Position numbers and translations under genes: made by a program. This document shows, in pieces, positions 11,401-43,975 of a stretch of DNA of 43,975 nt. This DNA is from Utricularia gibba (Eukaryota; Plantae; Magnoliophyta), in assembly GCA_002189035.1 (NCBI GenBank), contig NEEC01000344.1, forward strand, positions 1 to 43,975, read 5' to 3'. The notes below the pieces were generated by a model. The model saw only the letters and a list, made by a program, of their open reading frames with translations. It did not search any database and was not told where the DNA came from. Position 1 is the stretch's first letter. Every line of letters begins with the position of its first letter.

Positions 11401-11560
11401 TGATCCATTTATTAACGTTGGTTTTTTCGGCAGCTGCTACATGTTTCTGGAAAAGCTTGTCGTTTTTGGGTGGGTGCTTCGTTGGGAACTTCGTCCGGAC
11501 CAAGGTCCTGAGCCAAATTATTTCATTTATTGAAGTTCTGAGCCATCCACAAGCTTTATA
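11221..11560 (+). other. Internally deleted and degraded monomers
   Basis: About 10 bp (CCTATTCGAC) is lost at ~11238. In the next monomer the two HindIII sites (11453, 11551) are 98 bp apart instead of ~158. Confidence 0.85.
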
Positions 11561-17816: not shown

Positions 17817-20800
17817 AAAAAAAGTGATCCATTTATTAACGTTGGGTTTTCGGCAGCTGCCTACATTGTTTCTGAAGGAAAAGCTTGTCGTTTTTGGTGG
17901 GTGCTTTCGTTGGGAAGTTCATCCGGACCCAAGGTTCGGTTCGACTCCTGAGCCCAATCGGGTCCTATTCAACGAAAATCGTGATGCATTTATTGAAGTT
18001 AGGATGTCATGAGCACCCCAAATGGTTTTTCCAACCACAACTTTTTATTTGAGGAGGCGCTCTCGAGGGGCACAGGATCGGGCCGGAGGTCGTCGTCGGG
18101 CCCATAGTCATTTGTAGCCCGGCAAAAAAAGTGATCCATTTATTAACGTTGGGTTTTCGGCAGCTGCCTACATTGTTTCTGAAGGAAAAGCTTGTCGTTT
18201 TTTGGGTGGGTGCTTTCGTTGGGAAGTTCGTCCGGACCCAAGGTTCGGTTCGACTCCTGAGCCCAATCGGGTCTATTCGACGAAAATCGTGATGCATTTA
18301 TTGAAGTTAGGATGTCATGAGCACCCCAAATGGTTTTCTCATCCACAAGCTTTATATTTGAGGAGGCGCTCTCGAGGGGCACCAGGATCGGGCCGGAGGT
18401 CGGTCGGGCTCGGGCCCATAGTCATTTGTAGCCCGGGAAAAAAAGTGATCCATTTATTAACGTTGGGTTTTCGGCAGCTGCTTACATGGTTTCTGAAGGA
18501 AAAGCTTGTCGTTTTTGGTTGGGTGCTTTCGTTGGGAAGTTCATCCGGACCCAAGGTTCGGTTCGACTCCTGAGCCCAATCGGGTCTATTCGACGAAAAT
18601 CGTGATGCATTTTTTTGAAGTTAGGATGTCATGAGCACCCCAAATGGTTTTCTCATCCACAAGCTTTATATTTGAGGAGGCGCTCTCGAGGGGCACCAGG
18701 ATCGGGCCGGAGGTCGGGTCGGGCTCGGCCCATAGTCATTTGTAGCCCGGCAAAAAAAGTGATCCATTTATTAACGTTGGGTTTTCGGCAGCTGCTACAT
18801 GGTTTCTGAAGGAAAAGCTTGTCGTTTTTGGGTGGGTGCTTTTGTTGGAAGTTTCGTCCGGACCCAAGGTTCGGTTCGACTCCTGAGCCCAATCGGGTCC
18901 TATTCGACGAAAATCGTGATGCATTTATTGAAGTTAGGATGTCATGAGCACCCCAAATGGTTTTCTCAACCACAAGCTTTTTATTTGAGGAGGCGCTCTC
19001 GAGGGGCACTAGGATCGGGCCGGAGGTCATTCGAACTCGGGCCCATAGTCATTTGTAGCCCGGCAAAAAAAGTGATCCATTTATTAACGTTGGGTTTTCG
19101 GCAGCTGCCTACATTGTTTCTGAAGGAAAAGCTTGTCGTTTTTGGGTGGGTGCTTTCGTTGGGAAGTTCATCCGGACCCAAGGTTCGGTTCGACTCCTGA
19201 GCCCAATCGGGTCCTATTCGACGAAAATCGTGATGCATTTATTGAAGTTAGGATGTCATGAGCACCCAAAATGGTTTTCTCATCCACAAGCTTTATATTT
19301 GAGGAGGCGCTCTCGAGGGGCACCAGGATCGGGCCGGAGGTCGGTCGGGCTCGGGCCCATAGTCATTTGTAGCCCGGCAAAAAAAGTGATCCATTTATTA
19401 ACGTTGGGTTTTCGGCAGCTGCCTACATTGTTTCTGAAGGAAAAGCTTGTCGTTTTTGGTGGGTGCTTTCGTTGGGAAGTTCATCCGGACCCAAGGTTCG
19501 GTTCGACTCCTGAGCCCAATCGGGTCCTATTCAACGAAAATCGTGATGCATTTATTGAAGTTAGGATGTCATGAGCACCCCAAATGGTTTTCTCAACCAC
19601 AACTTTTTATTTGAGGAGGCGCTCTCGAGGGGCACTAGGATCGGGCCGGAGGTCGTCGAATCGGCCCATAGTCATTTGTAGCCCGGCAAAAAAAGTGATC
19701 CATTTATTAACGTTGGGTTTTCGGCAGCTGCCTACATGTTTCTGAAGGAAAAGCTTGTCTTTTTTGGGTGGGTGCTTTCGTTGGGAACTTCGTCCGACCC
19801 AAGGTTCGTTCGACTCCTGAGCCAATCGGTCCTATTCGACGAAAATCGTGATGCATTTATTGAAGTTAGGATGTCATGAGCACCCCAAATGGTTTTCTCA
19901 TCCACAAGCTTTATATTTGAGGAGGCTCTCGAGGGGCACCAGGATCGGGCCGGAGGTCGGTCGGGCTCGGGCCCATAGTCATTTGTAGCCCGGCAAAAAA
20001 GTGATCCATTTATTAACGTTGGGTTTTCGGCAGCTGCCTACATGGTTTCTGAAGGAAAAGCTTGTCGTTTTTGGGTGCTTTCATTGGGAAGTTCATCCGG
20101 ACCAAGGTTCGGTTCGACTCCTGAGCCCAATCGGGTCCTATTCGACGAAAAATCGTGATGCATTTTTTTGAAGTTAGGATGTCATGAGCACCCCAAATGG
20201 TTTCTCATCCACAAGCTTTTATATTTGAGGAGGCGCTCTCGAGGGGCACCAGGATCGGGCCGGAGGTCGGGTCGGGCTCGGCCCATAGTCATTTGTAGCC
20301 CGGCAAAAAAAGTGATCCATTTATTAACGTTGGGTTTTCGGCAGCTGCCTACATGGTTTCTGAAGGAAAAGCTTGTCGTTTTTGGGTGGGTGCTTTCGTT
20401 GGAAGTTCATCCGGACCAAGGTTCGGTTCGACTCCTGAGCCAATCGGGTCCTATTCACGAAAATCGTGATGCATTTATTGAAGTTAGGATGTCATGTCCT
20501 TTTGGGCTTTTTATTTGAGGAGGCGCTCTCGAGGGGCACTAGGATCGGGCCGGAGGTCGTCGAACTCGGGCCCATAGTCATTTGTAGCCCGGCAAAAAAG
20601 TGATCCATTTATTAACGTTGGGTTTTCGGCAGCTGCCTACATGGTTTCTGAAGGAAAAGCTTGTCGTTTTTTGGTGGGTGCTTTCGTTGGGAAGTTCGTC
20701 CGACCCAAGGTTTCGGTTCGACTCCTGAGCCAATCGGGTCCTATTCGACGAAAATCGTGATGCATTTATTGAAGTTAGGATGTCATGAGCACCCCAAATG

Positions 20801-21520
20801 GTTTTCTCATCCACAAGCTTTATATTTGAGGAGGCGCTCTCGAGGGGCACCAGGATCGGCCGGAGGTCGGTCGGGCTCGGGCCCATAGTCATTTGTAGCC
20901 CGGGAAAAAAAGTGATCCATTTATTAACGTTGGGTTTTCGGCAGCTGCCTACATGTTTCTGAAGGAAAAGCTTGTCGTTTTTGGTGGGTGCTTTCGTTGG
21001 GAAGTTCATCCGGACCCAAGGTTCGGTTCGACTCCTGAGCCCAATCGGGTCCTATTCGACGAAAATCGTGATGCATTTATTGAAGTTAGGATGTCATGAG
21101 CACCCAAATGGTTTTCTCAACCACAAGCTTTTATTTGAGGAGGCGCTCTCGAGGGGCACTAGGATCGGGCCGGAGGTCGTCGAAATCGATAGTCATTTGT
21201 AGCCCGGCAAAAAAAGTGATCCATTTATTAACGTTGGGTTTTCGGCAGCTGCCTACATTGTTTCTGAAGGAAAAGCTTGTCGTTTTTGGGTGGGTGCTTC
21301 GTTGGGAACTTCGTCCGACCCAAGTTTCGGTTCGACTCCTGAGCCAAATCGGGTCCTATTCGACGAAAATCGTGATGCATTTATTGAAGTTAGGATGTCA
21401 TGAGCACCCCAAATGGTTTTCTCATCCACAAGCTTTATATTTGAGGAGGCGCTCTCGAGGGGCACCAGGATCGGGCCGGAGGTCGGTCGGGCTCGGGCCC
21501 ATAGTCATTTGTAGCCCGGG
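16877..21520 (+). repeat. Three consecutive A-B-C-B-C pentamers (~1.55 kb each)
   Basis: A monomers start after 16877, 18432, 19989 and 21515 (intervals 1555, 1557, 1526), with B,C,B,C marker order between them. The first pentamer overlaps the last trimer of domain II. Confidence 0.65.
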
Positions 21521-23073
21521 AAAAAAAGTGATCCATTTATTAACGTTGGGTTTTCGGCAGCTGCCTACATGTTTCTGAAGGAAAAGCTTGTCGTTTTTGG
21601 TTGGGTGCTTTCGTTGGGAAGTTCATCCGGACCCAAGGTTCGGTTCGACTCCTGAGCCCAATCGGGTCCTATTCAACGAAAATCGTGATGCATTTTTTGA
21701 AGTTAGGATGTCATGAGCACCCCAAATGGTTTCTCATCCACAAGCTTTATATTTGAGGAGGCGCTCTCGAGGGGCACCAGGATCGGGCCGGAGGTCGGGT
21801 CGGGCTCGGGCCCATAGTCATTTGTAGCCCGGCAAAAAAAGTGATCCATTTATTAACGTTGGGTTTTCGGCAGCTGCCTACATTGTTTCTGAAGGAAAAG
21901 CTTGTCGTTTTTGGTGGGTGCTTTCGTTGGGAAGTTCATCCGGACCCAAGGTTCGGTTCGACTCCTGAGCCCAATCGGGTCCTATTCGACGAAAATCGTG
22001 ATGCATTTATTGAAGTTAGGATGTCATGAGCACCCCAAATGGTTTTCTCATCCACAAGCTTTATATTTGAGGAGGCGCTCTCGAGGGGCACTAGGATCGG
22101 CCGGAGGTCGTCGAATCGGGCCCATAGTCATTTGTAGCCCGGCAAAAAAAGTGATCCATTTATTAACGTTGGGTTTTCGGCAGCTGCCTACATGTTTCTG
22201 AAGGAAAAGCTTGTCGTTTTTGGTGGGTGCTTTCGTTGGGAAGTTCATCCGGACCCAAGGTTCGGTTCGACTCCTGAGCCCAATCGGGTCCTATTCGACG
22301 AAAATCGTGATGCATTTATTGAAGTTAGGATGTCATGAGCACCCCAAATGGTTTTCTCAACCACAACTTTTTATTTGAGGAGGCGCTCTCGAGGGGCACT
22401 AGGATCGGCCGGAGGTCGGTCGAAATCGGGCCCATAGTCATTTGTAGCCCGGCAAAAAAAGTGATCCATTTATTAACGTTGGGTTTTCGGCAGCTGCCTA
22501 CATTGTTTCTGAAGGAAAAGCTTGTCGTTTTTGGGTGGGTGCTTTCGTTGGGAAGTTCGTCCGGACCCAAGTTTCGGTTCGACTCCTGAGCCAATCGGGT
22601 CCTATTCGACGAAAATCGTGATGCATTTATTGAAGTTAGGATGTCATGAGCACCCCAAATGGTTTTCTCATCCACAAGCTTTATATTTGAGGAGGCGCTC
22701 TCGAGGGGCACCAGGATCGGGCCGGAGGTCGGTCGGGCTCGGGCCCATAGTCATTTGTAGCCCGGGAAAAAAAGTGATCCATTTATTAACGTTGGGTTTT
22801 CGGCAGCTGCTTACATGGTTTCTGAAGGAAAAGCTTGTCGTTTTTGGTTGGGTGCTTTCATTGGGAAGTTCATCCGGACCAAGGTTCGGTTCGACTCCTG
22901 AGCCCAATCGGGTCCTATTCGACGAAAATCGTGATGCATTTTTTTGAAGTTAGGATGTCATGAGCACCCAAATGGTTTTCTCATCCACAAGCTTTATATT
23001 TGAGGAGGCGCTCTCGAGGGGCACCAGGATCGGGCCGGAGGTCGGGTCGGGCTCGGGCCATAGTCATTTGTAG

Positions 23074-26000
23074 CCCGGCAAAAAAAGTGATCCATTTATT
23101 AACGTTGGGTTTTCGGCAGCTGCCTACATTGTTTCTGAAGGAAAAGCTTGTCGTTTTTGGTGGGTGCTTTCGTTGGGAAGTTCATCCGGACCCAAGGTTC
23201 GGTTCGACTCCTGAGCCCAATCGGGTCCTATTCAACGAAAATCGTGATGCATTTATTGAAGTTAGGATGTCATGAGCACCCCAAATGGTTTTCTCACCAC
23301 ATGCTTTTATTTGAGGAGGCGCTCTCGAGGGGCACTAGGATCGGGCCGGAGGTCATATCGAACTCGGGCCCATAGTCATTTGTAGCCGGCAAAAAAGTGA
23401 TCCATTTATTAACGTTGGGTTTTCGGCAGCTGCCTACATGGTTTCTGAAGGAAAAGCTTGTCTTTTTTGGGTGGGTGCTTCGTTGGGAACTTCGTCCGGA
23501 CCCAAGTTTCGGTTCGACTCCTGAGCCAATCGGTCCTATTCGACGAAAATCGTGATGCATTTATTGAAGTTAGGATGTCATGAGCACCCCAAATGGTTTT
23601 CTCATCCACAAGCTTTATATTTGAGGAGGCGCTCTCGAGGGGCACCAGGATCGGCCGGAGGTCAGGTCGGGCTCGGGCCCATAGTCATTTGTAGCCCGGG
23701 AAAAAAAGTGATCCATTTATTAACGTTGGGTTTTCGGCAGCTGCTTACATGGTTTCTGAAGGAAAAGCTTGTCGTTTTTGGTTGGTGCTTTCATTGGGAA
23801 GTTCATCCGGACCCAAGGTTCGGTTCGACTCCTGAGCCCAATCGGGTCCTATTCAACGAAAATCGTGATGCATTTTTTGAAGTTAGGATGTCATGAGCAC
23901 CCCAAATGGTTTTCTCATCCACAAGCTTTATATTTGAGGAGGCGCTCTCGAGGGGCACCAGGATCGGGCCGGAGGTCGGGTCGGGCTCGGGCCCATAGTC
24001 ATTTGTAGCCCGGCAAAAAAAGTGATCCATTTATTAACGTTGGGTTTTCGGCAGCTGCCTACATTGTTTCTGAAGGAAAAGCTTGTCGTTTTTGGGTGGG
24101 TGCTTTCGTTGGGAAGTTCATCCGGACCCAAGGTTCGGTTCGACTCCTGAGCCCAATCGGGTCCTATTCAACGAAAATCGTGATGCATTTATTGAAGTTA
24201 GGATGTCATGAGCACCCCAAATGGTTTTCTCAACCACAACTTTTTATTTGAGGAGGCGCTCTCGAGGGGCACTAGGATCGGCCGGAGGTCGTCGAAATCG
24301 GGCCCATAGTCATTTGTAGCCCGGCAAAAAAAGTGATCCATTTATTAACGTTGGGTTTTCGGCAGCTGCCTACATTGTTTCTGAAGGAAAAGCTTGTCTT
24401 TTTTGGTGGGCTTCGTTGGGAACTTCGTCCGGACCCAAGGTTCGGTTCGACTCCTGAGCCCAATCGGTCTATTCGACGAAAATCGTGATGCATTTATTGA
24501 AGTTAGGATGTCATGAGCACCCCAAATGGTTTTCTCATCCACAAGCTTTATATTTGAGGAGGCGCTCTCGAGGGGCACCAGGATCGGGCCGGAGGTCGGT
24601 CGGCTCGGGCCCATAGTCATTTGTAGCCCGGGAAAAAAAGTGATCCATTTATTAACGTTGGGTTTTCGGCAGCTGCCTACATGTTTCTGAAGGAAAAGCT
24701 TGTCGTTTTTGGGTGGGTGCTTTCGTTGGGAAGTTCGTCCGGACCCAAGGTTCGGTTCGACTCTGAGCCAATCGGGTCCTATTCGACGAAAATCGTGATG
24801 CATTTATTGAAGTTAGGATGTCATGAGCACCCCAAATGGTTTTCTCATCCACAAGCTTTATATTTGAGGAGGCGCTCTCGAGGGGCACTAGGATCGGCCG
24901 GAGGTCGGGTCGGGCTCGGGCCCATAGTCATTTGTAGCCCGCAAAAAAAGTGATCCATTTATTAACGTTGGGTTTTCGGCAGCTGCTTACATGGTTTCTG
25001 AAGGAAAAGCTTGTCGTTTTTGGGTGGGTGCTTTCGTTGGGAAGTTCGTCCGGACCCAAGGTTCGGTTCGACTCCTGAGCCAATCGGGTCCTATTCAACG
25101 AAAATCGTGATGCATTTATTGAAGTTAGGATGTCATGAGCACCCCAAATGGTTTTCTCAACCACAAGCTTTTTATTTGAGGAGGCGCTCTCGAGGGCACT
25201 AGGATCGGGCCGGAGGTCATATCGAACTCGGGCCCATAGTCATTTGTAGCCCGGCAAAAAAAGTGATCCATTTATTAACGTTGGGTTTTCGGCAGCTGCC
25301 TACATTGTTTCTGAAGGAAAAGCTTGTCGTTTTTGGGTGGGTGCTTTCGTTGGGAAGTTCATCCGGACCCAAGGTTCGTTCGACTCCTGAGCCCAATCGG
25401 GTCCTATTCGACGAAAATCGTGATGCATTTATTGAAGTTAGGATGTCATGAGCACCCAAATGGTTTTCTCATCCAAGCTTTATATTTGAGGAGGCGCTCT
25501 CGAGGGGCACAGGATCGGGCCGGAGGTCGGGTCGGGCTCGGGCCCATAGTCATTTGTAGCCCGGCAAAAAAAGTGATCCATTTATTAACGTTGGGTTTTC
25601 GGCAGCTGCCTACATTGTTTCTGAAGGAAAAGCTTGTCGTTTTTGGGTGGGTGCTTTCGTTGGGAAGTTCATCCGGACCCAAGGTTCGGTTCGACTCCTG
25701 AGCCCAATCGGGTCCTATTCGACGAAAATCGTGATGCATTTATTGAAGTTAGGATGTCATGAGCACCCCAAATGGTTTTCTCACCACATTTTTTATTTGA
25801 GGAGGCGCTCTCGAGGGGCACTAGGATCGGGCCGGAGGTCCGAACTCGGGCCCATAGTCATTTGTAGCCCGGCAAAAAAGTGATCCATTTATTAACGTTG
25901 GGTTTTCGGCAGCTGCCTACATGGTTTCTGAAGGAAAAGCTTGTCGTTTTTGGTGGGTGCTTTCGTTGGGAAGTTCATCCGAACCCAAGGTTCGTTCGAC

Positions 26001-29000
26001 TCCTGAGCCCATCGGGTCCTATTCGACGAAAATCGTGATGCATTTATTGAAGTTAGGATGTCATGAGCACCCAAATGGTTTTCTCAACCACAAGCTTTTT
26101 ATTTGAGGAGGCGCTCTCGAGGGGCACTAGGATCGGGCCGGAGGTCGGGTCGGGCTCGGGCCCATAGTCATTTGTAGCCCGGCAAAAAAAGTGATCCATT
26201 TATTAACGTTGGGTTTTCGGCAGCTGCCTACATGGTTTCTGAAGGAAAAGCTTGTCGTTTTTGGGTGGGTGCTTTCGTTGGGAACTTCGTCCGGACCCAA
26301 GGTTCGGTTCGACTCCTGAGCCAAATCGGTCTATTACGAAAATCGTGATGCATTTATTGAAGTTAGGATGTCATGAGCACCCCAAATGGTTTTCTCAACC
26401 ACAAGCTTTATTTGAGGAGGCGCTCTCGAGGGGCACCAGGATCGGGCCGGAGGTCGGGCTCGGGCCCATAGTCATTTGTAGCCCGGGAAAAAATGATCCA
26501 TTTATTAACGTTGGGTTTTCGGCAGCTGCTTACATGGTTTCTGAAGGAAAAGCTTGTCGTTTTTGGGGTGCTTTCGTTGGGAAGTTCATCCGGACCCAAG
26601 GTTCGGTTCGACTCCTGAGCCCAATCGGGTCCTATTCGACGAAAATCGTGATGCATTTATTGAAGTTAGGATGTCATGAGCACCCCAAATGGTTTTCTCA
26701 TCCACAAGCTTTATATTTGAGGAGGCGCTCTCGAGGGGCACCAGGATCGGGCCGGAGGTCGGGTCGGGCTCGGGCCCATAGTCATTTGTAGCCCGGCAAA
26801 AAAATGATCCATTTATTAACGTTGGGTTTTCGGCAGCTGCCTACATGGTTTCTGAAGGAAAAGCTTGTCGTTTTTGGTGGGTGCTTTCGTTGGGAAGTTC
26901 GTCGGACCCAAGGTTCGGTTCGACTCCTGAGCCCAATCGGGTCCTATTCGACGAAAATCGTGATGCATTTATTGAAGTTAGGATGTCATGAGCACCCCAA
27001 ATGGTTTTCTCAACACAAGCTTTATATTTGAGGAGGCGCTCTCGAGGGGCACCGGATCGGGCCGGAGGTCGGTCGGGCTCGGGCCCATAGTCATTTGTAG
27101 CCCGGGAAAAAAGTGATCCATTTATTAACGTTGGGTTTTCGGCAGCTGCCTACATTGTTTCTGAAGAAAAGCTTGTCGTTTTTGGGTGGGTGCTTTCGTT
27201 GGGAAGTTCATCCGGACCCAAGGTGTTCGACTCCTGAGCCAATCGGGTCCTATTCGACGAAAAATCGTGATGCATTTATTGAAGTTAGGATGTCATGAGC
27301 ACCCAAATGGTTTTCTCACCACAAGCTTTTATTTGAGGAGGCGCTCTCGAGGGGCACTAGGATCGGGCCGGAGGTCATTCGGGCTCGGGCCCATAGTCAT
27401 TTGTAGCCCGGCAAAAAAAGTGATCCATTTATTAACGTTGGGTTTTCGGCAGCTGCCTACATGGTTTCTGAAGGAAAAGCTTGTCTTTTTTTTGGGTGGG
27501 TGCTTTCGTTGGGAAGTTCATCCGGACCCAAGGTTCGTTTCGACTCCTGAGCCCAATCGGGTCCTATTCGACGAAAATCGTGATGCATTTATTGAAGTTA
27601 GGATGTCATGAGCACCCAAATGGTTTTCCCACAACTTTTTATTTGAGGAGGCGCTCTCGAGGGGCACCAGGATCGGCCGGAGGTCGTCGAATCGGGCCCA
27701 TAGTCATTTGTAGCCCGGCAAAAAAAAGTGATCCATTTATTAACGTTGGGTTTTCGGCAGCTGCCTACATGGTTTCTGAAGGAAAAGCTTGTCGTTTTTG
27801 GGTGGGTGCTTTCGTTGGGAAGTTCATCCGGACCCAAGGTTCGTTCGACTCCTGAGCCCAATCGGGTCCTATTCGACGAAAATCGTGATGCATTTATTGA
27901 AGTTAGGATGTCATGAGCACCCCAAATGGTTTTCTCACCACAAGCTTTTTATTTGAGGAGGCGCTCTCGAGGGGCACTAGGATCGGGCCGGAGGTCGGTC
28001 GAACTCGGGCCCATAGTCATTTGTAGCCCGGCAAAAAAAGTGATCCATTTATTAACGTTGGGTTTTCGGCAGCTGCCTACATGGTTTCTGAAGGAAAAGC
28101 TTGTCGTTTTTGGGTGGGTGCTTTCGTTGGGAAGTTCGTCCGACCCAAGGTTCGGTTCGACTCCTGAGCCCAATCGGTCCTATTCGACGAAAATCGTGAT
28201 GCATTTATTGAAGTTAGGATGTCATGAGCACCCCAAATGGTTTTCTCAACAAGCTTTATATTTGAGGAGGCGCTCTCGAGGGGCACCGGGATCGGGCCGG
28301 AGGTCGGTCGGGCTCGGGCCATAGTCATTTGTAGCCCGGCAAAAAAGTGATCCATTTATTAACGTTGGGTTTTCGGCAGCTGCCTACATTGTTTCTGAAG
28401 GAAAGCTTGTCGTTTTTGGGTGGGTGCTTTCGTTGGGAAGTTCATCCGGACCCAAGGTTCGTTCGACTCCTGAGCCCAATCGGGTCCTATTCGACGAAAA
28501 ATCGTGATGCATTTATTGAAGTTAGGATGTCATGAGCACCCCAAATGGTTTTCTCATCCACAAGCTTTTATTTGAGGAGGCTCTCGAGGGGCACCAGGAT
28601 CGGGCCGGAGGTCATATCGGCTCGGGCCCATAGTCATTTGTAGCCCGGCAAAAAAGTGATCCATTTATTAACGTTGGGTTTTCGGCAGCTGCCTACATGG
28701 TTTCTGAAGGAAAAGCTTGTCTTTTTTGGGTGGGTGCTTTCGTTGGAAGTTCATCCGGACCCAAGGTTCGTTCGACTCCTGAGCCAATCGGGTCCTATTC
28801 GACGAAAATCGTGATGCATTTATTGAAGTTAGGATGTCATGAGCACCCCAAATGGTTTTCTCAACCAAAGCTTTATATTTGAGGAGGCTCTCGAGGGGCA
28901 CCAGGATCGGGCGGAGGTCGGTCGGGCTCGGGCCCATAGTCATTTGTAGCCCGGGAAAAAAGTGATCCATTTATTAACGTTGGGTTTTCGGCAGCTGCTA

Positions 29001-32000
29001 CATGTTTCTGAAGGAAAAGCTTGTCGTTTTTGGTGGTGCTTTCGTTGGGAAGTTCGTCCGGACCCAAGTTCGTTCGACTCCTGAGCCCAATCGGGTCCTA
29101 TTCGACGAAAATCGTGATGCATTTATTGAAGTTAGGATGTCATGAGCACCCCAAATGGTTTTCTCAACCACATGCTTTTTATTTGAGGAGGCGCTCTCGA
29201 GGGGCACTAGGATCGGGCCGGAGGTCATATCGAACTCGGGCCATAGTCATTTGTAGCCCGGCAAAAAAAGTGATCCATTTATTAACGTTGGGTTTTCGGC
29301 AGCTGCCTACATGGTTTCTGAAGGAAAAGCTTGTCTTTTTTGGGTGGGTGCTTTCGTTGGGAAGTTCGTCCAGACCCAAGTTTCGTTCGACTCCTGAGCC
29401 AAATCAGGTCTATTTGACGAAAATCGTGATGCATTTATTGAAGTTAGGATGTCATGAGCACCCCAAATGGTTTTCTCATCCACAAGCTTTATATTTGAGG
29501 AGGCGCTCTCGAGGGGCACCAGGATCGGGCCGGAGGTCGGGTCGGGCTCGGGCCCATAGTCATTTGTAGCCCGGGAAAAAAAAAGTGATCCATTTATTAA
29601 CGTTGGGTTTTCGGCAGCTGCTTACATGGTTTCTGAAGGAAAAGCTTGTCGTTTTTGGTTGGTGCTTTCATTGGGAAGTTCATCCGGACCCAAGGTTCGG
29701 TTCGACTCCTGAGCCCAATCGGGTCCTATTCAACAAAAATCGTGATGCATTTATTGAGTTAGGATGTCATGAGCACCCCAAATGGTTTCTCATCCACAAG
29801 CTTTATATTTGAGGAGGCGCTCTCGAGGGGCACCAGGATCGGGCTGGAGGTCGGGTCGGCTCGGGCCCATAGTCATTTGTAGCCCGGCAAAAAAGTGATC
29901 CATTTATTAACGTTGGGTTTTCGGCAGCTGCCTACATGTTTCTGAAGGAAAAAGCTTGTCGTTTTTGGGTGGTGCTTTCGTTGGGAAGTTCATCCGGACC
30001 CAAGGTTCGGTTCGACTCCTGCCCCAATCGGGTCCTATTCAACGAAAATCGTGATGCATTTATTGAAGTTAGGATGTCATGAGCACCCAAATGGTTTTCC
30101 AACCACAACTTTTTATTTGAGGAGGCGCTCTCGAGGGCACTAGGATCGGCCGGAGGTCGTCGAAATCGGGCCCATAGTCATTTGTAGCCCGGCAAAAAAA
30201 GTGATCCATTTATTAACGTTGGGTTTTCGGCAGCTGCCTACATGTTTCTGAAGGAAAAGCTTGTCTTTTTTGGTGGTGCTGTCGTTGGTTTCGTCCGGTT
30301 TCGGTTCTCCTGAGCCAATCGGGTCTATTCGACGAAAATCGTGATGCATTTATTGAAGTTAGGATGTCATGAGCACCCCAAATGGTTTTCTCATCCACAA
30401 GCTTTATATTTGAGGAGGCTCTCGGGGGGCACCAGGATCGGGCCGGAGGTCGGTCGGCTCGGGCCCATAGTCATTTGTAGCCCGGGAAAAAAAGTGATCC
30501 ATTTATTAACGGGGTTTTCGGCAGCTGCTACATTGTTTCTGAAGGAAAAGCTTGTCGTTTTTGGTGGGTGCTTTCGTTGGGAAGTTCGTCCGGACCCAAG
30601 GTTCGGTTCGACTCCTGAGCCAATCGGGTCCTATTCGACGAAAATCGTGATGCATTTATTGAAGTTAGGATGTCATGAGCACCCCAAATGGTTTTCTCAT
30701 CCACAAGCTTTATATTTGAGGAGGCGCTCTCGAGGGGCACTAGGATCGGCCGGAGGTCGGGTCGGGCTCGGGCCCATAGTCATTTGTAGCCCGGCAAAAA
30801 AAGTGATCCATTTATTAACGTTGGGTTTTCGGCAGCTGCTTACATGGTTTCTGAAGGAAAAGCTTGTCGTTTTTGGGTGGGTGCTTTCGTTGGAAGTTCA
30901 TCCGGACCCAAGGTTCGGTTCGACTCCTGAGCCCAATCGGGTCCTATTCACGAAAATCGTGATGCATTTATTGAAGTTAGGATGTCATGAGCACCCCAAA
31001 TGGTTTTCCAACCACATGCTTTTTATTTGAGGAGGCGCTCTCGAGGGGCACTAGGATCGGGCCGGAGGTCGGGTCGAACTCGGGCCCATAGTCATTTGTA
31101 GCCCGGCAAAAAAAGTGATCCATTTATTAACGTTGGGTTTTCGGCAGCTGCCTACATGTTTCTGAAGGAAAAGCTTGTCGTTTTTGGTGGGTGCTTTCGT
31201 TGGGAAGTTCATCCGGACCCAAGGTTCGTTCGACTCCTGAGCCAATCGGTCCTATTCGACGAAAATCGTGATGCATTTATTGAAGTTAGGATGTCATGAG
31301 CACCCCAAATGGTTTTCTCATCCACAAGCTTTATATTTGAGGAGGCGCTCTCGAGGGGCACAGGATCGGGCGGAGGTCGGGTCGGGCTCGGGCCCATAGT
31401 CATTTGTAGCCCGGCAAAAAAAGTGATCCATTTATTAACGTTGGGTTTTCGGCAGCTGCCTACATTGTTTCTGAAGGAAAAGCTTGTCGTTTTTGGTGGT
31501 GCTTTCGTTGGGAAGTTCATCCGGACCCAAGGTTCGTTCGACTCCTGAGCCCAATCGGGTCCTATTCGACGAAAATCGTGATGCATTTATTGAAGTTAGG
31601 ATGTCATGAGCACCCCAAATGGTTTTCTCAACCAATGCTTTTTATTTGAGGAGCGCTCTCGAGGGGCACTAGGATCGGGCCGGAGGTCATATCGAACTCG
31701 GGCCCATAGTCATTTGTAGCCCGGCAAAAAAAGTGATCCATTTATTAACGTTGGGTTTTCGGCAGCTGCCTACATTGGTTTCTGAAGGAAAAGCTTGTCG
31801 TTTTTTGTGGTGCTTTCGTTGGGAAGTTCATCCGACCCAAGGTTCGTTCGACTCCTGAGCCCAATCGGGTCCTATTCACGAAAATCGTGATGCATTTATT
31901 GAAGTTAGGATGTCATGAGCACCCAAATGGTTTTCTCAACCACATGCTTTTTATTTGAGGAGGCGCTCTCGAGGGGCACTAGGATCGGGCCGGAGGTCTT

Positions 32001-35000
32001 GTCGAAATCGGGCCCATAGTCATTTGTAGCCCGGCAAAAAAAGTGATCCATTTATTAACGTTGGGTTTTCGGCAGCTGCCTACATGGTTTCTTGGAAAAG
32101 CTTGTCTTTTTGGGTGGGTGCTTCGTTGGGAACTTCGTCCGACCCAAGTTTCGGTTCGACTCCTGAGCCAAATCGGTCTATTCGACGAAAATCGTGATGC
32201 ATTTATTGAAGTTAGGATGTCATGAGCACCCCAAATGGTTTTCTCAACCACAAGCTTTTTATTTGAGGAGGCGCTCTCGAGGGGCACCAGGATCGGCCGG
32301 AGGTCGGGTCGGGCTCGGGCCATAGTCATTTGTAGCCCGGGAAAAAAAGTGATCCATTTATTAACGTTGGGTTTTCGGCAGCTGCCTACATGGTTTCTGA
32401 AGGAAAAGCTTGTCGTTTTTTGGGGTGCTTTCGTTGGGAAGTTTCCGGACCCAAGGTTCGTTCGACTCCTGAGCCCAATCGGGTCCTATTCGACGAAAAT
32501 CGTGATGCATTTATTGAAGTTAGGATGTCATGAGCACCCCAAATGGTTTTCTCATCCACAAGCTTTATATTTGAGGAGGCGCTCTCGAGGGGCACAGGAT
32601 CGGGCCGGAGGTCGGGTCGGCTCGGGCCATAGTCATTTGTAGCCCGGCAAAAAAAGTGATCCATTTATTAACGTTGGGTTTTCGGCAGCTGCCTACATGG
32701 TTTCTGAAGGAAAAGCTTGTCGTTTTTGGGTGGGTGCTTTCGTTGGGAAGTTCATCCGGACCCAAGGTTCGGTTCGACTCCTGAGCCCAATCGGGTCCTA
32801 TTCGACGAAAATCGTGATGCATTTATTGAAGTTAGGATGTCATGAGCACCCAAATGGTTTTCTCAACCACAAGCTTTATATTTGAGGAGGCGCTCTCGAG
32901 GGGCACCAGGATCGGGCCGGAGGTCGGTCGGGCTCGGGCCATAGTCATTTGTAGCCCGGGAAAAAAAGTGATCCATTTATTAACGTTGGGTTTTCGGCAG
33001 CTGCCTACATTGTTTCTGAAGGAAAAGCTTTTCGTTTTTGGTGGGTGCTTTCGTTGGGAAGTTCATCCGGACCCAAGTTCGTTCGACTCCTGAGCCAATC
33101 GGTCCTATTCGACGAAAAATGATGCATTTATTGAAGTTAGGATGTCATGAGCACCCCAAATGGTTTTCTCAACCACATGCTTTTATTTGAGGAGGCGCTC
33201 TCGAGGGGCACTAGGATCGGGCCGGAGGTCATTCGAACTCGGGCCCATAGTCATTTGTAGCCCGGCAAAAAAGTGATCCATTTATTAACGTTGGGTTTTC
33301 GGCAGCTGCCTACATGGTTTCTGAAGGAAAAGCTTGTCTTTTTTGGGTGGGTGCTTTCGTTGGGAAGTTCATCCGACCCAAGGTTCGGTTCGACTCCTGA
33401 GCCAATCGGTCCTATTCGACGAAAATCGTGATGCATTTATTGAAGTTAGGATGTCATGAGCACCCCAAATGGTTTTCTCACAACTTTTTATTTGAGGAGG
33501 CGCTCTCGAGGGGCACTAGGATCGGCCGGAGGTCAGTCGGGGCCCATAGTCATTTGTAGCCCGGCAAAAAAAGTGATCCATTTATTAACGTTGGGTTTTC
33601 GGCAGCTGCCTACATTGTTTCTGAAGGAAAAGCTTGTCGTTTTTGGTGGGTGCTTTCGTTGGGAAGTTCATCCGGACCCAAGGTTCGTTCGACTCCTGAG
33701 CCCAATCGGGTCCTATTCACGAAAATCGTGATGCATTTATTGAAGTTAGGATGTCATGAGCACCCCAAATGGTTTTCTCAACCACATGCTTTTTATTTGA
33801 GGAGGCGCTCTCGAGGGGCACTAGGATCGGGCCGGAGGTCATATCGAACTCGGGCCCATAGTCATTTGTAGCCCGGCAAAAAAAGTGATCCATTATTAAC
33901 GTTGGGTTTTCGGCAGCTGCCTACATGGTTTTCAAGGAAAAGCTTGTCTTTTTTGGGTGGGTGCTGTCGTTGGGAACTTCGTCCGACCCAAGTTTTCGGT
34001 TCGACTCCTGAGCCAAATCGGTCTATTTGACGAAAATCGTGATGCATTTATTGAAGTTAGGATGTCATGAGCACCCCAAATGGTTTTCTCAACCAAAGCT
34101 TATATTTGAGGAGGCGCTCTCGAGGGGCACCGGATCGGGCCGGAGGTCGGTCGGGCTCGGGCCCATAGTCATTTGTAGCCCGGGAAAAAAAGTGATCCAT
34201 TTATTAACGTTGGGTTTTCGGCAGCTGCCTACATTGTTTCTGAAGGAAAAGCTTGTCGTTTTTGGTGGGTGCTTTCGTTGGGAAGTTCATCCGGACCCAA
34301 GGTTCGTTCGACTCCTGAGCCCAATCGGGTCCTATTCGACGAAAATCGTGATGCATTTATTGAAGTTAGGATGTCATGAGCACCCCAAATGGTTTTCTCA
34401 ACCACAGCTTTTATTTGAGGAGGCGCTCTCGAGGGGCAGGATCGGGCCGGAGGTCATATCGAACTCGGGCCCATAGTCATTTGTAGCCCGGCAAAAAAAG
34501 TGATCCATTTATTAACGTTGGGTTTTCGGCAGCTGCCTACATGGTTTCTGAAGGAAAAGCTTGTCGTTTTTTGGGTGGGTGCTTTCGTTGGGAAGTTCAT
34601 CCGGACCCAAGGTTCGTTCGACTCCTGAGCCCAATCGGGTCCTATTCGACGAAAATCGTGATGCATTTATTGAAGTTAGGATGTCATGAGCACCCCAAAT
34701 GGTTTCTCATCAAAGCTTTATATTTGAGGAGGCGCTCTCGAGGGGCACCAGGATCGGGCCGGAGGTCGGTCGGGCTCGGGCCATAGTCATTTGTAGCCGG
34801 AAAAAAGTGATCCATTTATTAACGTTGGGTTTTCGGCAGCTGCCTACATTGTTTCTGAAGGAAAAGCTTGTCGTTTTTGGGTGGGTGCTTTCGTTGGGAA
34901 GTTCATCCGGACCCAAGGTTCGGTTCGACTCCTGAGCCCAATCGGGTCCTATTCACGAAAATCGTGATGCATTTATTGAAGTTAGGATGTCATGAGCACC

Positions 35001-38000
35001 CAAATGGTTTTCTCAACCACATGCTTTTTATTTGAGGAGGCGCTCTCGAGGGGCACTAGGATCGGGCCGGAGGTCATATCGAACTCGGGCCATAGTCATT
35101 TGTAGCCGGGCAAAAAAAGTGATCCATTTATTAACGTTGGGTTTTCGGCAGCTGCCTACATGGTTTCTGAAGGAAAAGCTTGTCTTTTTGGGTGGGTGCT
35201 GTCGTTGGGAACTTCGTCCGACCCAAGTTTCGGTTCGACTCCTGAGCCAAATCAGGTACTATTTGACGAAAATCGTGATGCATTTATTGAAGTTAGGATG
35301 TCATGAGCACCCAAATGGTTTTCTCATCCACAAGCTTTATATTTGAGGAGGCGCTCTCGAGGGGCACCAGGATCGGCCGGAGGTCAGGTCGGGCTCGGGC
35401 CCATAGTCATTTGTAGCCCGGGAAAAAAAAGTGATCCATTTATTAACGTTGGGTTTTCGGCAGCTGCTTACATGTTTCTGAAGGAAAAGCTTGTCGTTTT
35501 TGGTGGTGCTTTCATTGGGAAGTTCATCCGGACCAAGGTTCGTTCGACTCCTGAGCCCAATCGGGTCCTATTCAACAAAAATCAACATGCATTTTTTGAA
35601 GTTAGGATGTCATGAGCACCCCAAATGGTTTCTCATCCACAAGCTTTATATTTGAGGAGGCGCTCTCGAGGGGCACCAGGATCGGGCCGGAGGTCGGGTC
35701 GGGCTCGGGCCCATAGTCATTTGTAGCCCGGCAAAAAAAGTGATCCATTTATTAACGTTGGGTTTTCGGCAGCTGCCTACATTGTTTCTGAAGGAAAAGC
35801 TTGTCGTTTTTGGGTGGGTGCTTTCGTTGGGAAGTTCATCCGGACCCAAGGTTCGGTTCGACTCCTGAGCCCAATCGGGTCCTATTCAACGAAAATCGTG
35901 ATGCATTTATTGAAGTTAGGATGTCATGAGCACCCCAAATGGTTTTCCAACCACATGCTTTTTATTTGAGGAGGCGCTCTCGAGGGGCACTAGGATCGGC
36001 CGGAGGTCATGTCGAAATCGGGCCCATAGTCATTTGTAGCCCGGCAAAAAAAGTGATCCATTTATTAACGTTGGGTTTTCGGCAGCTGCCTACATGTTTC
36101 TGAAGGAAAAGCTTGTCTTTTTTGGTGGGTGCTGTCGTTGGGAACTTCGTCCGGACCCAAGTTTCGGTTCGACTCCTGAGCCAAATCAGGTCTATTTGAC
36201 GAAAATCGTGATGCATTTATTGAAGTTAGGATGTCATGAGCACCCCAAATGGTTTTCTCATCCACAAGCTTTATATTTGAGGAGGCGCTCTCGAGGGCAC
36301 CAGGATCGGGCCGGAGGTCAGGTCGGCTCGGGCCCATAGTCATTTGTAGCCCGGGAAAAAAAGTGATCCATTTATTAACGTTGGGTTTTCGGCAGCTGCC
36401 TACATTGTTTCTGAAGGAAAAGCTTGTCGTTTTTGGTGGGTGCTTTCGTTGGGAAGTTCGTCCGGACCCAAGGTTCGGTTCGACTCCTGAGCCAATCGGG
36501 TCCTATTCGACGAAAATCGTGATGCATTTATTGAAGTTAGGATGTCATGAGCACCCAAATGGTTTTCTCAACCACAAGCTTTATATTTGAGGAGGCGCTC
36601 TCGAGGGGCACTAGGATCGGCCGGAGGTCGGTCGGGCCGGGCCCATAGTCATTTGTAGCCCGGCAAAAAAAGTGATCCATTTATTAACGTTGGGTTTTCG
36701 GCAGCTGCCTACATGGTTTCTGAAGGAAAAGCTTGTCGTTTTTGGGTGGTGCTTTCGTTGGAAGTTCATCCGGACCCAAGGTTCGGTTCGACTCCTGAGC
36801 CAATCGGGTCCTATTCAACGAAAATCGTGATGCATTTATTGAAGTTAGGATGTCATGAGCACCCCAAATGGTTTTCCAACCACATGCTTTTTATTTGAGG
36901 AGGCGCTCTCGAGGGGCACTAGGATCGGGCCGGAGGTCATATCGAACTCGGGCCCATAGTCATTTGTAGCCCGGCAAAAAAGTGATCCATTTATTAACGT
37001 TGGGTTTTCGGCAGCTGCCTACATTGTTTCTGAAGGAAAAGCTTGTCGTTTTTGGGTGGTGCTTTCGTTGGGAAGTTCATCCGGACCCAAGGTTCGTTCG
37101 ACTCCTGAGCCCAATCGGGTCCTATTCGACGAAAATCGTGATGCATTTATTGAAGTTAGGATGTCATGAGCACCCCAAATGGTTTTCTCATCCACAAGCT
37201 TTATATTTGAGGAGGCGCTCTCGAGGGGCACCAGGATCGGGCCGGAGGTCGGTCGGGCTCGGGCCCATAGTCATTTGTAGCCCGGCAAAAAAAGTGATCC
37301 ATTTATTAACGTTGGGTTTTCGCAGCTGCCTACATTGTTTCTGAAGGAAAAGCTTGTCGTTTTTGGGTGGGTGCTTTCGTTGGGAAGTTCATCCGGACCC
37401 AAGGTTCGTTCGACTCCTGAGCCCAATCGGGTCCTATTCGACGAAAATCGTGATGCATTTATTGAAGTTAGGATGTCATGAGCACCCCAAATGGTTTTCT
37501 CAACCACATGCTTTTTATTTGAGGAGGCGCTCTCGAGGGGCACTAGGATCGGGCCGGAGGTCATATCGAACTCGGGCCCATAGTCATTTGTAGCCCGGCA
37601 AAAAAAGTGATCCATTATTAACGTTGGGTTTTCGGCAGCTGCCTACATGGTTTCTGAAGGAAAAGCTTGTCGTTTTTTGTGGGTGCTTTCGTTGGGAAGT
37701 TCATCCGGACCCAAGGTTCGTTCGACTCCTGAGCCCAATCGGGTCCTATTCGACGAAAATCGTGATGCATTTATTGAAGTTAGGATGTCATGAGCACCCA
37801 AATGGTTTTCTCAACCACATGCTTTTTATTTGAGGAGGCGCTCTCGAGGGCACTAGGATCGGGCCGGAGGTCGGTCGAAATCGGGCCCATAGTCATTTGT
37901 AGCCCGGCAAAAAAAGTGATCCATTTATTAACGTTGGGTTTTCGGCAGCTGCCTACATTGTTTCTGAAGGAAAAGCTTGTCGTTTTTGGGTGGGTGCTTT

Positions 38001-40683
38001 CGTTGGGAAGTTCATCCGACCCAAGGTTCGGTTCGACTCCTGAGCCAAATCGGTCTATTCGACGAAAATCGTGATGCATTTATTGAAGTTAGGATGTCAT
38101 GAGCACCCCAAATGGTTTTTCTCAACCACATGCTTTTATTTGAGGAGGCGCTCTCGAGGGGCACCAGGATCGGGCCGGAGGTCGGGTTGGGCTCGGGCCA
38201 TAGTCATTTGTAGCCCGGCAAAAAAAGTGATCCATTTATTAACGTTGGGTTTTCGGCAGCTGCCTACATGGTTTCTGAAGGAAAAGCTTGTCGTTTTTGG
38301 TGGGTGCTTTCGTTGGGAAGTTCATCCGGACCCAAGGTTCGTTCGACTCCTGAGCCCAATCGGGTCCTATTCGACGAAAATCGTGATGCATTTATTGAAG
38401 TTAGGATGTCATGAGCACCCAAATGGTTTTCTCATCCACAAGCTTTATATTTGAGGAGGCGCTCTCGAGGGGCACCAGGATCGGGCCGGAGGTCGGGTCG
38501 GGCTCGGGCCCATAGTCATTTGTAGCCCGGCAAAAAAAAGTGATCCATTTATTAACGTTGGGTTTTCGGCAGCTGCCTACATGGTTTCTGAAGGAAAAGC
38601 TTGTCGTTTTTGGTGGGTGCTTTCGTTGGGAAGTTCGTCCGGACCAAGGTTCGGTTCGACTCCTGAGCCCAATCGGGTCCTATTCGACGAAAATCGTGAT
38701 GCATTTATTGAAGTTAGGATGTCATGAGCACCCCAAATGGTTTTCTCACAAAGCTTATATTTGAGGAGGCGCTCTCGAGGGGCACCGGATCGGGCCGGAG
38801 GTCGGTCGGGCTCGGGCCCATAGTCATTTGTAGCCCGGGAAAAAAGTGATCCATTTATTATTGGGTTTTCGGCAGCTGCCTACATTGTTTCTGAAGGAAA
38901 AGCTTGTCGTTTTTGGTGGGTGCTTTCGTTGGGAAGTTCATCCGGACCCAAGGTGTTCGACTCCTGAGCCAATCGGGTCCTATTCGACGAAAATCGTGAT
39001 GCATTTATTGAAGTTAGGATGTCATGAGCACCCCAAATGGTTTTCTCAACCACATGCTTTTATTTGAGGAGGCGCTCTCGAGGGGCACTAGGATCGGGCC
39101 GGAGGTCATATCGAACTCGGGCCCATAGTCATTTGTAGCCCGGCAAAAAAGTGATCCATTTATTAACGTTGGGTTTTCGGCAGCTGCCTACATGGTTTCT
39201 GAAGGAAAAGCTTGTCTTTTTTGGGTGGGTGCTTTCGTTGGGAAGTTCATCCGAACCCAAGGTTCGTTCGACTCCTGAGCCAAATCGGGTCCTATTCGAC
39301 GAAAATCGTGATGCATTTATTGAAGTTAGGATGTCATGAGCACCCAAATGGTTTTCTCACAACATACTTTTTATTTGAGGAGGCGCTCTCGAGGGGCACT
39401 AGGATCGGCCGGAGGTCGTCGAATCGGGCCCATAGTCATTTGTAGCCCAAAAAAGTGATCCATTTATTAACGTTGGGTTTTCGGCAGCTGCCTACATGGT
39501 TTCTGAAGGAAAAGCTTGTCGTTTTTGGGTGGGTGCTTTCGTTGGGAAGTTCATCCGGACCCAAGGTTCGTTCGACTCCTGAGCCCAATCGGGTCCTATT
39601 CGACGAAAATCGTGATGCATTTATTGAAGTTAGGATGTCATGAGCACCCCAAATGGTTTTCTCAACCACATGCTTTTTATTTGAGGAGGCGCTCTCGAGG
39701 GGCACTAGGATCGGGCCGGAGGTCATATCGAACTCGGGCCCATAGTCATTTGTAGCCCGGCAAAAAAAGTGATCCATTATTAACGTTGGGTTTTCGCAGC
39801 TGCTACATGGTTTCTGAAGGAAAAGCTTGTCTTTTTTGGGTGGGTGCTTCGTTGGGAAGTTTCGTCGACCCAAGTTTCGGTTCGACTCCTGAGCCAAATC
39901 GGTCTATTCGACGAAAATCGTGATGCATTTATTGAAGTTAGGATGTCATGAGCACCCCAAATGGTTTTCTCAACAAGCTTTATATTTGAGGAGGCGCTCT
40001 CGAGGGGCACCGGGATCGGGCCGGAGGTCGGTCGGGCTCGGGCCCATAGTCATTTGTAGCCCGGGAAAAAAGTGATCCATTTATTAATTGGGTTTTCGGC
40101 AGCTGCCTACATTGTTTCTGAAGGAAAAGCTTGTCGTTTTTGGGTGGGTGCTTTCGTTGGGAAGTTCATCCGGACCCAAGGTTCGTTCGACTCTGAGCCC
40201 ATCGGGTCCTATTCGACGAAAATCGTGATGCATTTATTGAAGTTAGGATGTCATGAGCACCCAAATGGTTTTCTCAACCACATGCTTTTATTTGAGGAGG
40301 CGCTCTCGAGGGGCACTAGGATCGGGCCGGAGGTCATATCGAACTCGGGCCCATAGTCATTTGTAGCCCGGCAAAAAAGTGATCCATTTATTAACGTTGG
40401 GTTTTCGGCAGCTGCCTACATGGTTTCTGAAGGAAAAGCTTGTCTTTTTTTTGGGTGGGTGCTTTCGTTGGAAGTTCATCCGAACCCAAGGTTCGTTCGA
40501 CTCCTGAGCCAATCGGGTCCTATTCGACGAAAAATCGTGATGCATTTATTGAAGTTAGGATGTCATGAGCACCCCAAATGGTTTTCTCAACAAAGCTTTA
40601 TATTTGAGGAGCGCTCTCGAGGGGCACCGGGATCGGGCCGGAGGTCAGGTCGGGCTCGGGCCCATAGTCATTTGTAGCCCGGG
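23074..40683 (+). repeat. Domain III: three tandem copies of a 19-monomer higher-order repeat (~5.86 kb)
   Basis: Copies start at ~23074, 28950 and 34797 and end at ~40678. The A marker CATTGGG occurs once per copy (23792, 29669, 35513), with 19 HindIII anchors between successive A monomers. CCCGGG offsets from the first site in each copy: 0/932/2787/3406/5255; 0/911/2766/3385/4609; 0/933/3417/4643/5261. Confidence 0.8.
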
Positions 40684-43600
40684 AAAAAAGTGATCCATTT
40701 ATTAATTGGGTTTTCGGCAGCTGCCTACATTGTTTCTGAAGGAAAAGCTTGTCGTTTTTGGGTGGGTGCTTTCGTTGGAAGTTCGTCCGGACCCAAGTTT
40801 CGTTCGACTCCTGAGCCAATCGGTCCTATTCGACGAAATCGTGATGCATTTATTGAAGTTAGGATGTCATGAGCACCCAAATGGTTTTCTCAACCACATG
40901 CTTTTTATTTGAGGAGGCGCTCTCGAGGGGCACAGGATCGGGCCGGAGGTCGTCGAAATCGGGCCCATAGTCATTTGTAGCCCAAAAAAAAGTGATCCAT
41001 TTATTAACGTTGGGTTTTCGGCAGCTGCCTACATGTTTCTGAAGGAAAAGCTTGTCGTTTTTGGGGGTGCTTTCGTTGGGAAGTTCATCCGGACCCAAGG
41101 TTCGTTCGACTCCTGAGCCCAATCGGGTCCTATTCGACGAAAATCGTGATGCATTTATTGAAGTTAGGATGTCATGAGCACCCCAAATGGTTTTCTCAAC
41201 CACATGCTTTTTATTTGAGGAGGCGCTCTCGAGGGGCACTAGGATCGGGCCGGAGGTCATTCGAACTCGGGCCCATAGTCATTTGTAGCCCGGCAAAAAA
41301 AGTGATCCATTTATTAACGTTGGGTTTTCGGCAGCTGCCTACATGGTTTCTGAAGGAAAAGCTTGTCTTTTTTGGGTGGGTGCTTCGTTGGAAGTTCATC
41401 CGACCCAAGTTTCGGTTCGACTCCTGAGCCAAATCGGTCCTATTCACGAAAATCGTGATGCATTTATTGAAGTTAGGATGTCATGAGCACCCAAATGGTT
41501 TTCTCAACCACACTTTTATATTTGAGGAGCGCTCTCGAGGGGCACCGGGATCGGGCCGGAGGTCGGTCGGGCTCGGGCCATAGTCATTTGTAGCCCGGCA
41601 AAAAAGTGATCCATTTATTAACGTTGGGTTTTCGGCAGCTGCCTACATTGTTTCTGAAGGAAAAGCTTGTCGTTTTTGGTGGGTGCTTTCGTTGGGAAGT
41701 TCATCCGGACCCAAGGTTCGTTCGACTCCTGAGCCAATCGGGTCCTATTCGACGAAAATCGTGATGCATTTATTGAAGTTAGGATGTCATGAGCACCCCA
41801 AATGGTTTTCTCAACCACATGCTTTTTATTTGAGGAGGCGCTCTCGAGGGCACTAGGATTGGGCCGGAGGTCATATCGAACTCGGGCCCATAGTCATTTG
41901 TAGCCCGGCAAAAAAAGTGATCCATTTATTAACGTTGGGTTTTCGGCAGCTGCCTACATGGTTTCTCAAGGAAAAGCTTGTCTTTTTTGGGTGGTGCTTC
42001 GTTGGAAGTTCGTCCGGACCAAGTTTCGTTCGACTCCTGAGCCAAATCGGTCCTATTTGACGAAAATCGTGATGCATTTATTGAAGTTAGGATGTCATGA
42101 GCACCCCAAATGGTTTTCTCAACAAATTTTATATTTGAGGAAGGCGCTCTCGAGGGGCACCGGGATCGGCCGGAGGTCAGGTCGGGCTCGGGCCTATAGT
42201 CATTTGTAGCCCGGGAAAAAAGTGATCCATTTATTCAATTGGGTTTTCGGCAGCTGCCTACATTGTTTTCTGAAGGAAAAGCTTTTCGTTTTTGGGTGGG
42301 TGCTTTCGTTGGGAAGTTCATCCGGACCCAAGTTTCTGTTCGACTCCTGAGCCATCGGGTCCTATTCGACGAAAATCGTGATGCATTTATTGAAGTTAGG
42401 ATGTCATGAGCACCCCAAATGGTTTTCTCAACCACATGCTTTTATTTGAGGAGGCGCTCTCGAGGGGCACTAGGATCGGGCCGGAGGTCATATCGAACTC
42501 GGGCCCATAGTCATTTGTAGCCCGGCAAAAAAAGTGATCATTAATTAACGTTGGGTTTTCGGCAGCTGCCTACATGGTTTCTGAAGGAAAAGCTTGTCTT
42601 TTTGGGTGGGTGCTTTCGTTGGAAGTTCATCCGAACCCAAGGTTCTGTTCGACTCCTGAGCCAATCGGTCCTATTCGACGAAAATCGTGATGCATTTATT
42701 GAAGTTAGGATGTCATGAGCACCCCAAATGGTTTTCTCAACAAAGTGCTTTATATTTGAGGAGCGCTCTCGAGGGCACGGATCGGGTCGGAGGTCAGGTC
42801 GGGCTCGGGCCTATAGTCATTTGTAGCCCGGGAAAAAAAGTGATCCATTATTCATATTGGGTTTTCGGCAGCTGCCTACATTGTTTCTGAAGGAAAAGCT
42901 TTTCGTTTTTGGTGGGTGCTTTCGTTGGGAAGTTCGTCCGGACCCAAGTTTCTGTTCGACTCCTGAGCCCAATCGGGTCCTATTCGACGAAAATCGTGAT
43001 GCATTTATTGAAGTTAGGATGTCATGAGCACCCAAATGGTTTTCTCAACCACATGCTTTTATTTGAGGAGGCGCTCTCGAGGGCACTAGGATCTGGCCGG
43101 AGGTCTTGTCGAAATCGGGCCCATAGTCATTTGTAGCCCGCAAAAAAAGTGATCCATTTATTAACGTTGGGTTTTCGGCAGCTGCTACATGGTTTCTGAA
43201 GGAAAAGCTTGTCGTTTTTGGGTGGGTGCTTTCGTTGGGAAGTTCATCGGACCCAAGGTTCTGTTCGACTCCTGAGCCCAATCGGGTCCTATTCGACGAA
43301 AATCGTGATGCATTTATTGAAGTTAGGATGTCATGAGCACCCCAAATGGTTTTTCTCAACAATGCTTTTTATTTGAGGAGGCGCTCTCGAGGGGCACTAG
43401 GATTGGCCGGAGGTCATATCGAACTCGGGCCCATAGTCATTTGTAGCCCGGAAAAAAAGTGATCCATTTATTAACGTTGGGTTTTCGGCAGCTGCCTACA
43501 TGGTTTCTGAAGGAAAAGCTTGTCTTTTTTGGGTGGTGCTTCGTTGGGAACTTCGTCCAGACCCAAGTTTCGGTTCGACTCCTGAGCCAAATCGGTACTA

Positions 43601-43975
43601 TTTGACGAAAATCGTGATGCATTTATTGAAGTTAGGATGTCATGAGCACCCAAATGGTTTTCTCAACACAAGTGCTTTTATTTGAGGAGGCGCTCTCGAG
43701 GGGCACAGGATCGGGCCGGAGGTCAGGTCGGGCTCGGGCCCATAGTCATTTGTAGCCCGGCAAAAAAGTGATCCATTTATTAACGTTGGGTTTTCGGCAG
43801 CTGCCTACATTGTTTCTGAAGGAAAAGCTTGTCGTTTTTGGGTGGGTGCTTTCGTTGGGAAGTTCATCCGGACCCAAGTTCTGTTCGACTCCTGAGCCCA
43901 ATCGGGTCCTATTCGACGAAAATCGTGATGCATTTATTGAAGTTAGGATGTCATGAGCACCCCAAATGGTTTCTC
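40684..43975 (+). repeat. Domain IV: A-free tail built only of B and C monomers, with private variants
   Basis: I saw no CTTACAT, TTTCATTGG or CATTTTTTG after ~35.6 kb. C-end CCCGGG spacing is ~617 bp (40060/40678, 42210/42827). Variants concentrated here: ACCGGGATC, GGCCTATAG, TTCTGTTCG, GCTTTTCG and loss of AACGTT. Confidence 0.65.

Follow-up and report, generated by a model that had tools for sequence, protein, structure and literature searches.

Contig NEEC01000344.1 of the Utricularia gibba assembly GCA_002189035.1 carries satellite DNA and raises the question of whether its repeat units follow an order larger than the single monomer. The window that we analyzed is the whole stretch of 43,975 nucleotides (positions 1 to 43,975, forward strand), and an initial annotation had proposed within it a higher-order repeat (HOR) in which the same order of 19 monomers is read three times in tandem. 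By splitting the array at an anchor and comparing the monomers with each other, we found that this order indeed stands there three times. A block of 19 monomers (~5.86 kb, units of ~312 bp) is repeated head-to-tail over monomers 75 to 131, at 23140-40740, and the identity peaks at lags of 19 and 38 monomers rise above all others. The limits first proposed, 23074-40683, describe the same block cut at another monomer phase (66 bp). The three-copy order, its limits and the statistics behind it are observed directly in the window.

The block is part of a longer array, which is described as follows.

2 to 43972, forward strand: satellite array with units of ~310-314 bp, called from Tandem Repeats Finder (TRF) and anchor spacing, GC content 0.49, skews uniform

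This single same-strand array fills the window and runs off both of its ends (TRF period 310, 37.2 + 105 copies, 93-94% matches), and base composition and strand skews are flat throughout. Monomers were cut at the GGAAAAGCTTGT anchor, with two mismatches tolerated, and then compared by all-vs-all global alignment. The split gave 142 full monomers in one orientation with regular anchor spacing, and the background gapped identity between monomers over the whole array was 0.937. A unit of 315 bp had been proposed, which comes close to the consensus of 314 bp and exceeds the mean monomer length of 308-310 bp.

Within this array, the three copies of the block follow each other directly.

23140 to 29012, forward strand: copy 1, monomers 75-93, 5873 bp, with a substitution divergence of 1.87% to copy 2 and 1.53% to copy 3
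29013 to 34859, forward strand: copy 2, monomers 94-112, 5847 bp, recognized by in-phase similarity, richest of the three in private variants, with one monomer of 291 bp at 30253
34860 to 40740, forward strand: copy 3, monomers 113-131, 5881 bp, with lag-19 similarity dropping to background from monomer 113 on

The lag-19 similarity starts at monomer 75 and ends after the pair 112/131 with sharp edges, and each of the three copies keeps a period of exactly 19. One copy passes seamlessly into the next, through junction monomers of ordinary length that contain no foreign sequence. Against out-of-phase controls, the in-phase similarity of copy 1 reached z values of 8.9 with copy 2 and 11.0 with copy 3. 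No fourth copy follows in the next 10 monomers, as monomers 113-122 compared with 132-141 are at background (0.933 gapped identity), and the 19 monomers that precede the block do not share its phase (z -0.5).

Several independent measures single out the same two lags. For monomers 75-131, gapped identity was 0.9626 at lag 19 and 0.9682 at lag 38, while every other lag stayed at 0.932-0.949 (about 0.938), and these two lags are already the highest when the whole array is taken. None of 20,000 permutations of monomer order within the block reached the lag-19 or lag-38 identity (z 9.7). When only substitutions were counted, from a MAFFT alignment of all monomers, the divergence was 1.78% at lag 19 and 1.54% at lag 38, compared with 3.50 ± 0.25% at other lags. 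Triplets of monomers (i, i+L, i+2L) had 53 derived substitutions in common at L = 19, compared with 1-12 for the remaining values of L up to 24. Concordance at 18 common polymorphic sites was 0.82 and 0.85 at lags 19 and 38, compared with 0.52-0.64 elsewhere. At 7-13 of the 19 positions, the best partner in another copy was the in-phase monomer, where chance would give about one. An alignment-free count, based on 16-mers occurring two or three times in the window, ranked lag 19 first (21 events) and lag 38 third (11 events) against a mean of 2.6. Finally, a maximal-segment scan of all diagonals across the whole window gave the block a score of 0.498, compared with a null maximum of 0.124, and the diagonals ran unbroken for 38 monomers at lag 19 and 19 monomers at lag 38.

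These measures also bear on whether there is a true 19-unit block at all, since a short cycle of two or three monomer subtypes could line up by chance. Some features of the array would favor such a cycle: there is a weak 3-monomer periodicity across it, and AA and GG subtypes alternate. However, lags 18, 20, 21 and all multiples of 2 or 3 are at background, and lags 19 and 38 lie at least 7 standard deviations out; moreover, there are rare words, confined to two or three places, whose spacing is exactly one or two periods. The lag profile already refutes the short cycle, and we leave it next to no probability.

The diagnostic words named in the initial annotation mostly behave as described there. 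CATTGGG, taken to mark one full monomer of its type per copy, occurs once in each copy at 23792, 29669 and 35513 (spacings of 5877 and 5844), TTTGGGGTGC occurs only at 26562 and 32419, one period apart, and GGTGTTCGAC only at 27222 and 38952, two periods apart. The pair of CACCGGATC at 27050 and 38783 is also present; however, this word has a third, out-of-phase match at 34128. The CCCGGG offsets, said to match across copies, do so in part: two are present in all three copies, but three in only two. The longest exact repeat in the window is only 319 bp, and therefore the block is invisible by eye or to exact-match tools; exact 150-mer sharing fails to single out lag 19. The block is visible only through its variant patterns.

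Sharp edges leave the question of whether the triple is all that remains of a once longer 19-monomer HOR array, with flanks made of decayed or overwritten copies. Two weak signs point in this direction: monomers 36-55 and 55-74 resemble each other faintly at lag 19 (permutation p 0.0017, z 2.0-2.4), and left-flank monomers are slightly more similar to the block than expected when shifted by 12 in phase (z 2.9 among 19 residues). On the other hand, the flank blocks do not keep the phase of the triple (z -0.5 to -1.3). We also assigned each outside monomer to the best of 19 position-consensus monomers, and the 19-unit order was not found in the flanks, with 3 of 74 successions correct against 4.1 expected by the null; older copies of the order were rejected on this position-assignment test. 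Together with the sharp block edges, these results make a decayed longer array improbable.

The differences between the copies carry information of their own. Over ~5.78 kb, the substitution differences numbered 108 between copies 1 and 2, 96 between copies 2 and 3 and 89 between copies 1 and 3, that is, 1.5-1.9%, and this spread is not significant; the three pairwise distances are near-equal and star-like. The copies differ by 3-4% once indels are counted, and divergence in the right half of the unit is about twice that in the left half. Among 93 private substitutions, 76 are alleles found in other monomers and 17 are array-wide singletons, while 36 sites are common to two of the three copies. 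Linked patches (sites 170/233/234) switch monomers between two common subtypes at unit positions 9, 13 and 17, and at these switches copies 2 and 3 agree against copy 1. These patterns fit conversion from other monomers, or recurrent change at hot sites.

Small indels in the array are mostly length changes of short homopolymers, and we considered that the copy differences might be mere homopolymer sequencing noise. This was rejected in part: the two-fold contrast survives homopolymer compression, and the indels in homopolymers themselves follow the phase of the block (Jaccard 0.28 and 0.38, compared with 0.14 ± 0.04). A good part of the small variation is therefore inherited and not noise.

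The same data bear on a possible assembly artefact, in which reads from one or more similar places were stacked or mis-joined and tandem copies were created or miscounted. The window is satellite from end to end, the hardest type of sequence to assemble, its exact repeats are all as short as noted above, and homopolymer-length variants are frequent, all of which speak for such an error. However, re-use of reads would not yield copies 1.5-1.9% apart in substitutions with 36 two-copy sites and linked subtype switches, and a mis-join would still require three distinct genomic copies of the 19-unit order. It seems to us that an artefact of this kind is unlikely.

We consider it probable that the block is a real local triplication, produced by out-of-register homology-directed repair and then blurred by patchy conversion. 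Some points weigh against this view. The monomer order in a pure-satellite window is known from the assembly alone, and in-phase pairs stand out from out-of-phase pairs by a factor of only about two. Alignment shifts beside small indels account for some of the apparent substitutions, and if mis-mapped reads entered the polishing, they could have written alleles from elsewhere into the copies, which would look like conversion. In addition, nothing in the sequence would separate unequal exchange from break-induced or template-switch replication.

We infer the following course for the triplication and the later conversion. Homology-directed repair, acting on monomers whose pairing was shifted by 19 units, would have copied exactly 19 consecutive ~312-bp monomers head-to-tail. 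This may have taken two events close together in time or a single event with two additional rounds of copying. Candidate routes are unequal exchange, between sister chromatids or within one chromatid, and an equivalent event of replication or template switching. The kilobase-scale amplification suggested at the outset is the natural reading of the block, and the seamless junctions, the exact period of 19 and the star-like distances fit in-register copying. Later drift would have come mostly from short patches carrying alleles of other monomers (gene conversion or hot-site recurrence) and partly from new point mutations. We also examined whether copy 2 could be a hybrid from a single unequal crossover in a two-copy ancestor. 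Under this model, copy 2 should resemble copy 3 on its left and copy 1 on its right. The pattern of informative sites disagrees with this, as the sites common to copies 2 and 3 cluster in the right half, although their counts are small and they lie in linked patches.

The amplification had been called recent, which overstates the case: the copies are 1.5-1.9% apart by substitutions alone and 3-4% apart when indels are added. This copy divergence is only about half of the array background and places the event at a middling age when measured against array turnover. The mutation rate was assumed to be like that of Arabidopsis, ~7e-9 per site per generation. Under this rate, total divergence gives a soft upper age bound near a million generations, and the array-unique changes alone give an equally soft age of the order of 1e5 generations.

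As to the nature of the satellite itself, the 314-bp unit goes back to an old dimer: its two halves of ~157 bp match at 105 of 157 positions (score 33.5, compared with -8 ± 5.3 for shuffles). The size of this ~157-bp subunit hints at a centromeric satellite, which is only suggestive. Open reading frames (ORFs) in the window are short, irregular and found on both strands, the longest being 229 amino acids. A hidden gene or ribozyme was ruled out by the empty search results: Pfam had no match for the three ORFs tested, the longest included, ARAGORN found no transfer RNA in the window, and no Rfam family matched within 23-29 kb. The window is non-coding and shows both features expected of satellite DNA, a head-to-tail array in one orientation and no gene content. 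The 19-monomer unit carries no transposon marker either. The satellite family is unnamed, as literature searches by unit size and with three 20- to 22-base consensus words gave no match; a conserved exact 31-mer, present in 121 monomers, had no match in metagenome contigs.

The block had also been likened to primate alpha-satellite HORs. Alpha-satellite HORs have hundreds or thousands of copies that define the whole array, with 20-40% difference between monomers but at most a few per cent between HOR copies. In common with them, the present block is an ordered multi-monomer unit arranged head-to-tail with seamless junctions and visible only via diagnostic variants, and its fixed order of 19 monomers is kept three times. 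However, its copies are not far more alike than its monomers (1.5-1.9% compared with 3.5% in substitutions; 96.3-96.8% compared with 93.8% in identity), and instead of many copies homogenizing the whole array there are three, between flanks that lack the 19-unit order. The likeness to alpha satellite had been overstated.

Plant centromere satellites offer a closer comparison. In the Arabidopsis Col-CEN assembly, an HOR was defined as at least 3 consecutive CEN180 monomers matching another run on the same strand with at most 5 differences (Naish et al., bioRxiv 10.1101/2021.05.30.446350). HOR blocks there have a mean of 3.7 monomers and reach 60 monomers or 10.7 kb; their similarity declines with age and distance, and recombination-based homogenization was proposed as the cause (bioRxiv 10.1101/2021.05.30.446350). 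The diagonals of 38 and 19 monomers in our window exceed three consecutive matching monomers. With all alignment columns counted, at most 5 differences were found in 1 of 38 pairs at lag 19 and 0 of 19 pairs at lag 38, a threshold that was set for 178-bp units and a polished assembly. When it was scaled by length to at most 9 differences, 8 of 38 and 6 of 19 pairs passed, compared with 2.5% of other pairs, and runs of 4-5 monomers stayed within 5 differences when only substitutions were counted. As in the Arabidopsis CEN180/CEN178 blocks, runs of consecutive monomers recur nearby on the same strand within an array of very alike monomers. The differences are that our monomer is a 314-bp dimer rather than 178 bp, and that our copies are directly adjacent and exceed the limit of 5 differences of that paper once indels are counted. 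The best reading is that the present block resembles the local HOR blocks of plant centromere satellites, not the array-wide HOR of alpha satellite.

Outside and partly overlapping the triple, two further patterns were recorded.

38896 to 43820, forward strand: short-period pattern of alternating ~311- and ~304-bp units with a 7-monomer two-copy block, seen as low divergence at lags 2, 5 and 7
953 to 11448, forward strand: older block of ~17-20 monomers present twice (monomers 3-19 compared with 23-36), the register slipping by 3 monomers, from the maximal-segment scan

At the right end, substitution divergence was 0.037, 0.037 and 0.027 at lags 2, 5 and 7, compared with 0.048-0.058 at lags 1, 3, 4, 6 and 8, and the 7-monomer block occurs twice (monomers 126-134 and 133-141), overlapping the end of copy 3. 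The left-end pair scored 0.133 at lag 17 and 0.106 at lag 20, compared with 0.105 for the 95th percentile of the permutation null, which the pair exceeds by a narrow margin. Its monomers 3-11 match 23-31 at lag 20 with 1.2% substitutions and monomers 8-19 match 25-36 at lag 17 with 1.6%, which implies a 3-monomer register slip inside a trimer-patterned stretch.

Between this pair and the triple, at 11152-23139, lies the weak lag-19 relation of monomers 36-55 and 55-74 given above, which is out of phase with the main triple; a cluster of rare 16-mers at 11407 recurs one period later. This relation may be due to chance or to a separate duplication of 19 monomers at an earlier time. At 11449-11699 lies a monomer of 251 bp that carries four internal deletions, and its neighbor at 11152-11448 (297 bp) is also damaged; the TRF call of the array is split only at the damaged unit near 11.5 kb. 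Over 1-23139, the subtypes show a weak 3-monomer periodicity, with one AA-type unit followed by two GG-type units (alignment sites 233/234), and CATTGGG and CCCGGG recur in places at steps of ~930 bp.

Three lag signals stand side by side in the window: the strong triple at lag 19, directly left of it a weak pair at lag 19, and farther left a pair at lags 17 and 20. On this basis, one could speculate that the array grows by repeated exchanges at a preferred register of ~17-20 monomers (5.3-6.2 kb). We regard this as a long shot. If it were true, the preferred distance could reflect physical spacing in chromatin or replication rather than chance.

Taken as it stands, the block is an ordinary instance of the local block duplication already well known from plant and human satellites, and it leaves the understanding of such arrays unchanged. 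What it offers is a clean, bounded example of a plant satellite array growing in kilobase steps, together with a rough internal measure of what follows such a step: about 4-5 later differences reuse alleles of other monomers for each new point change.

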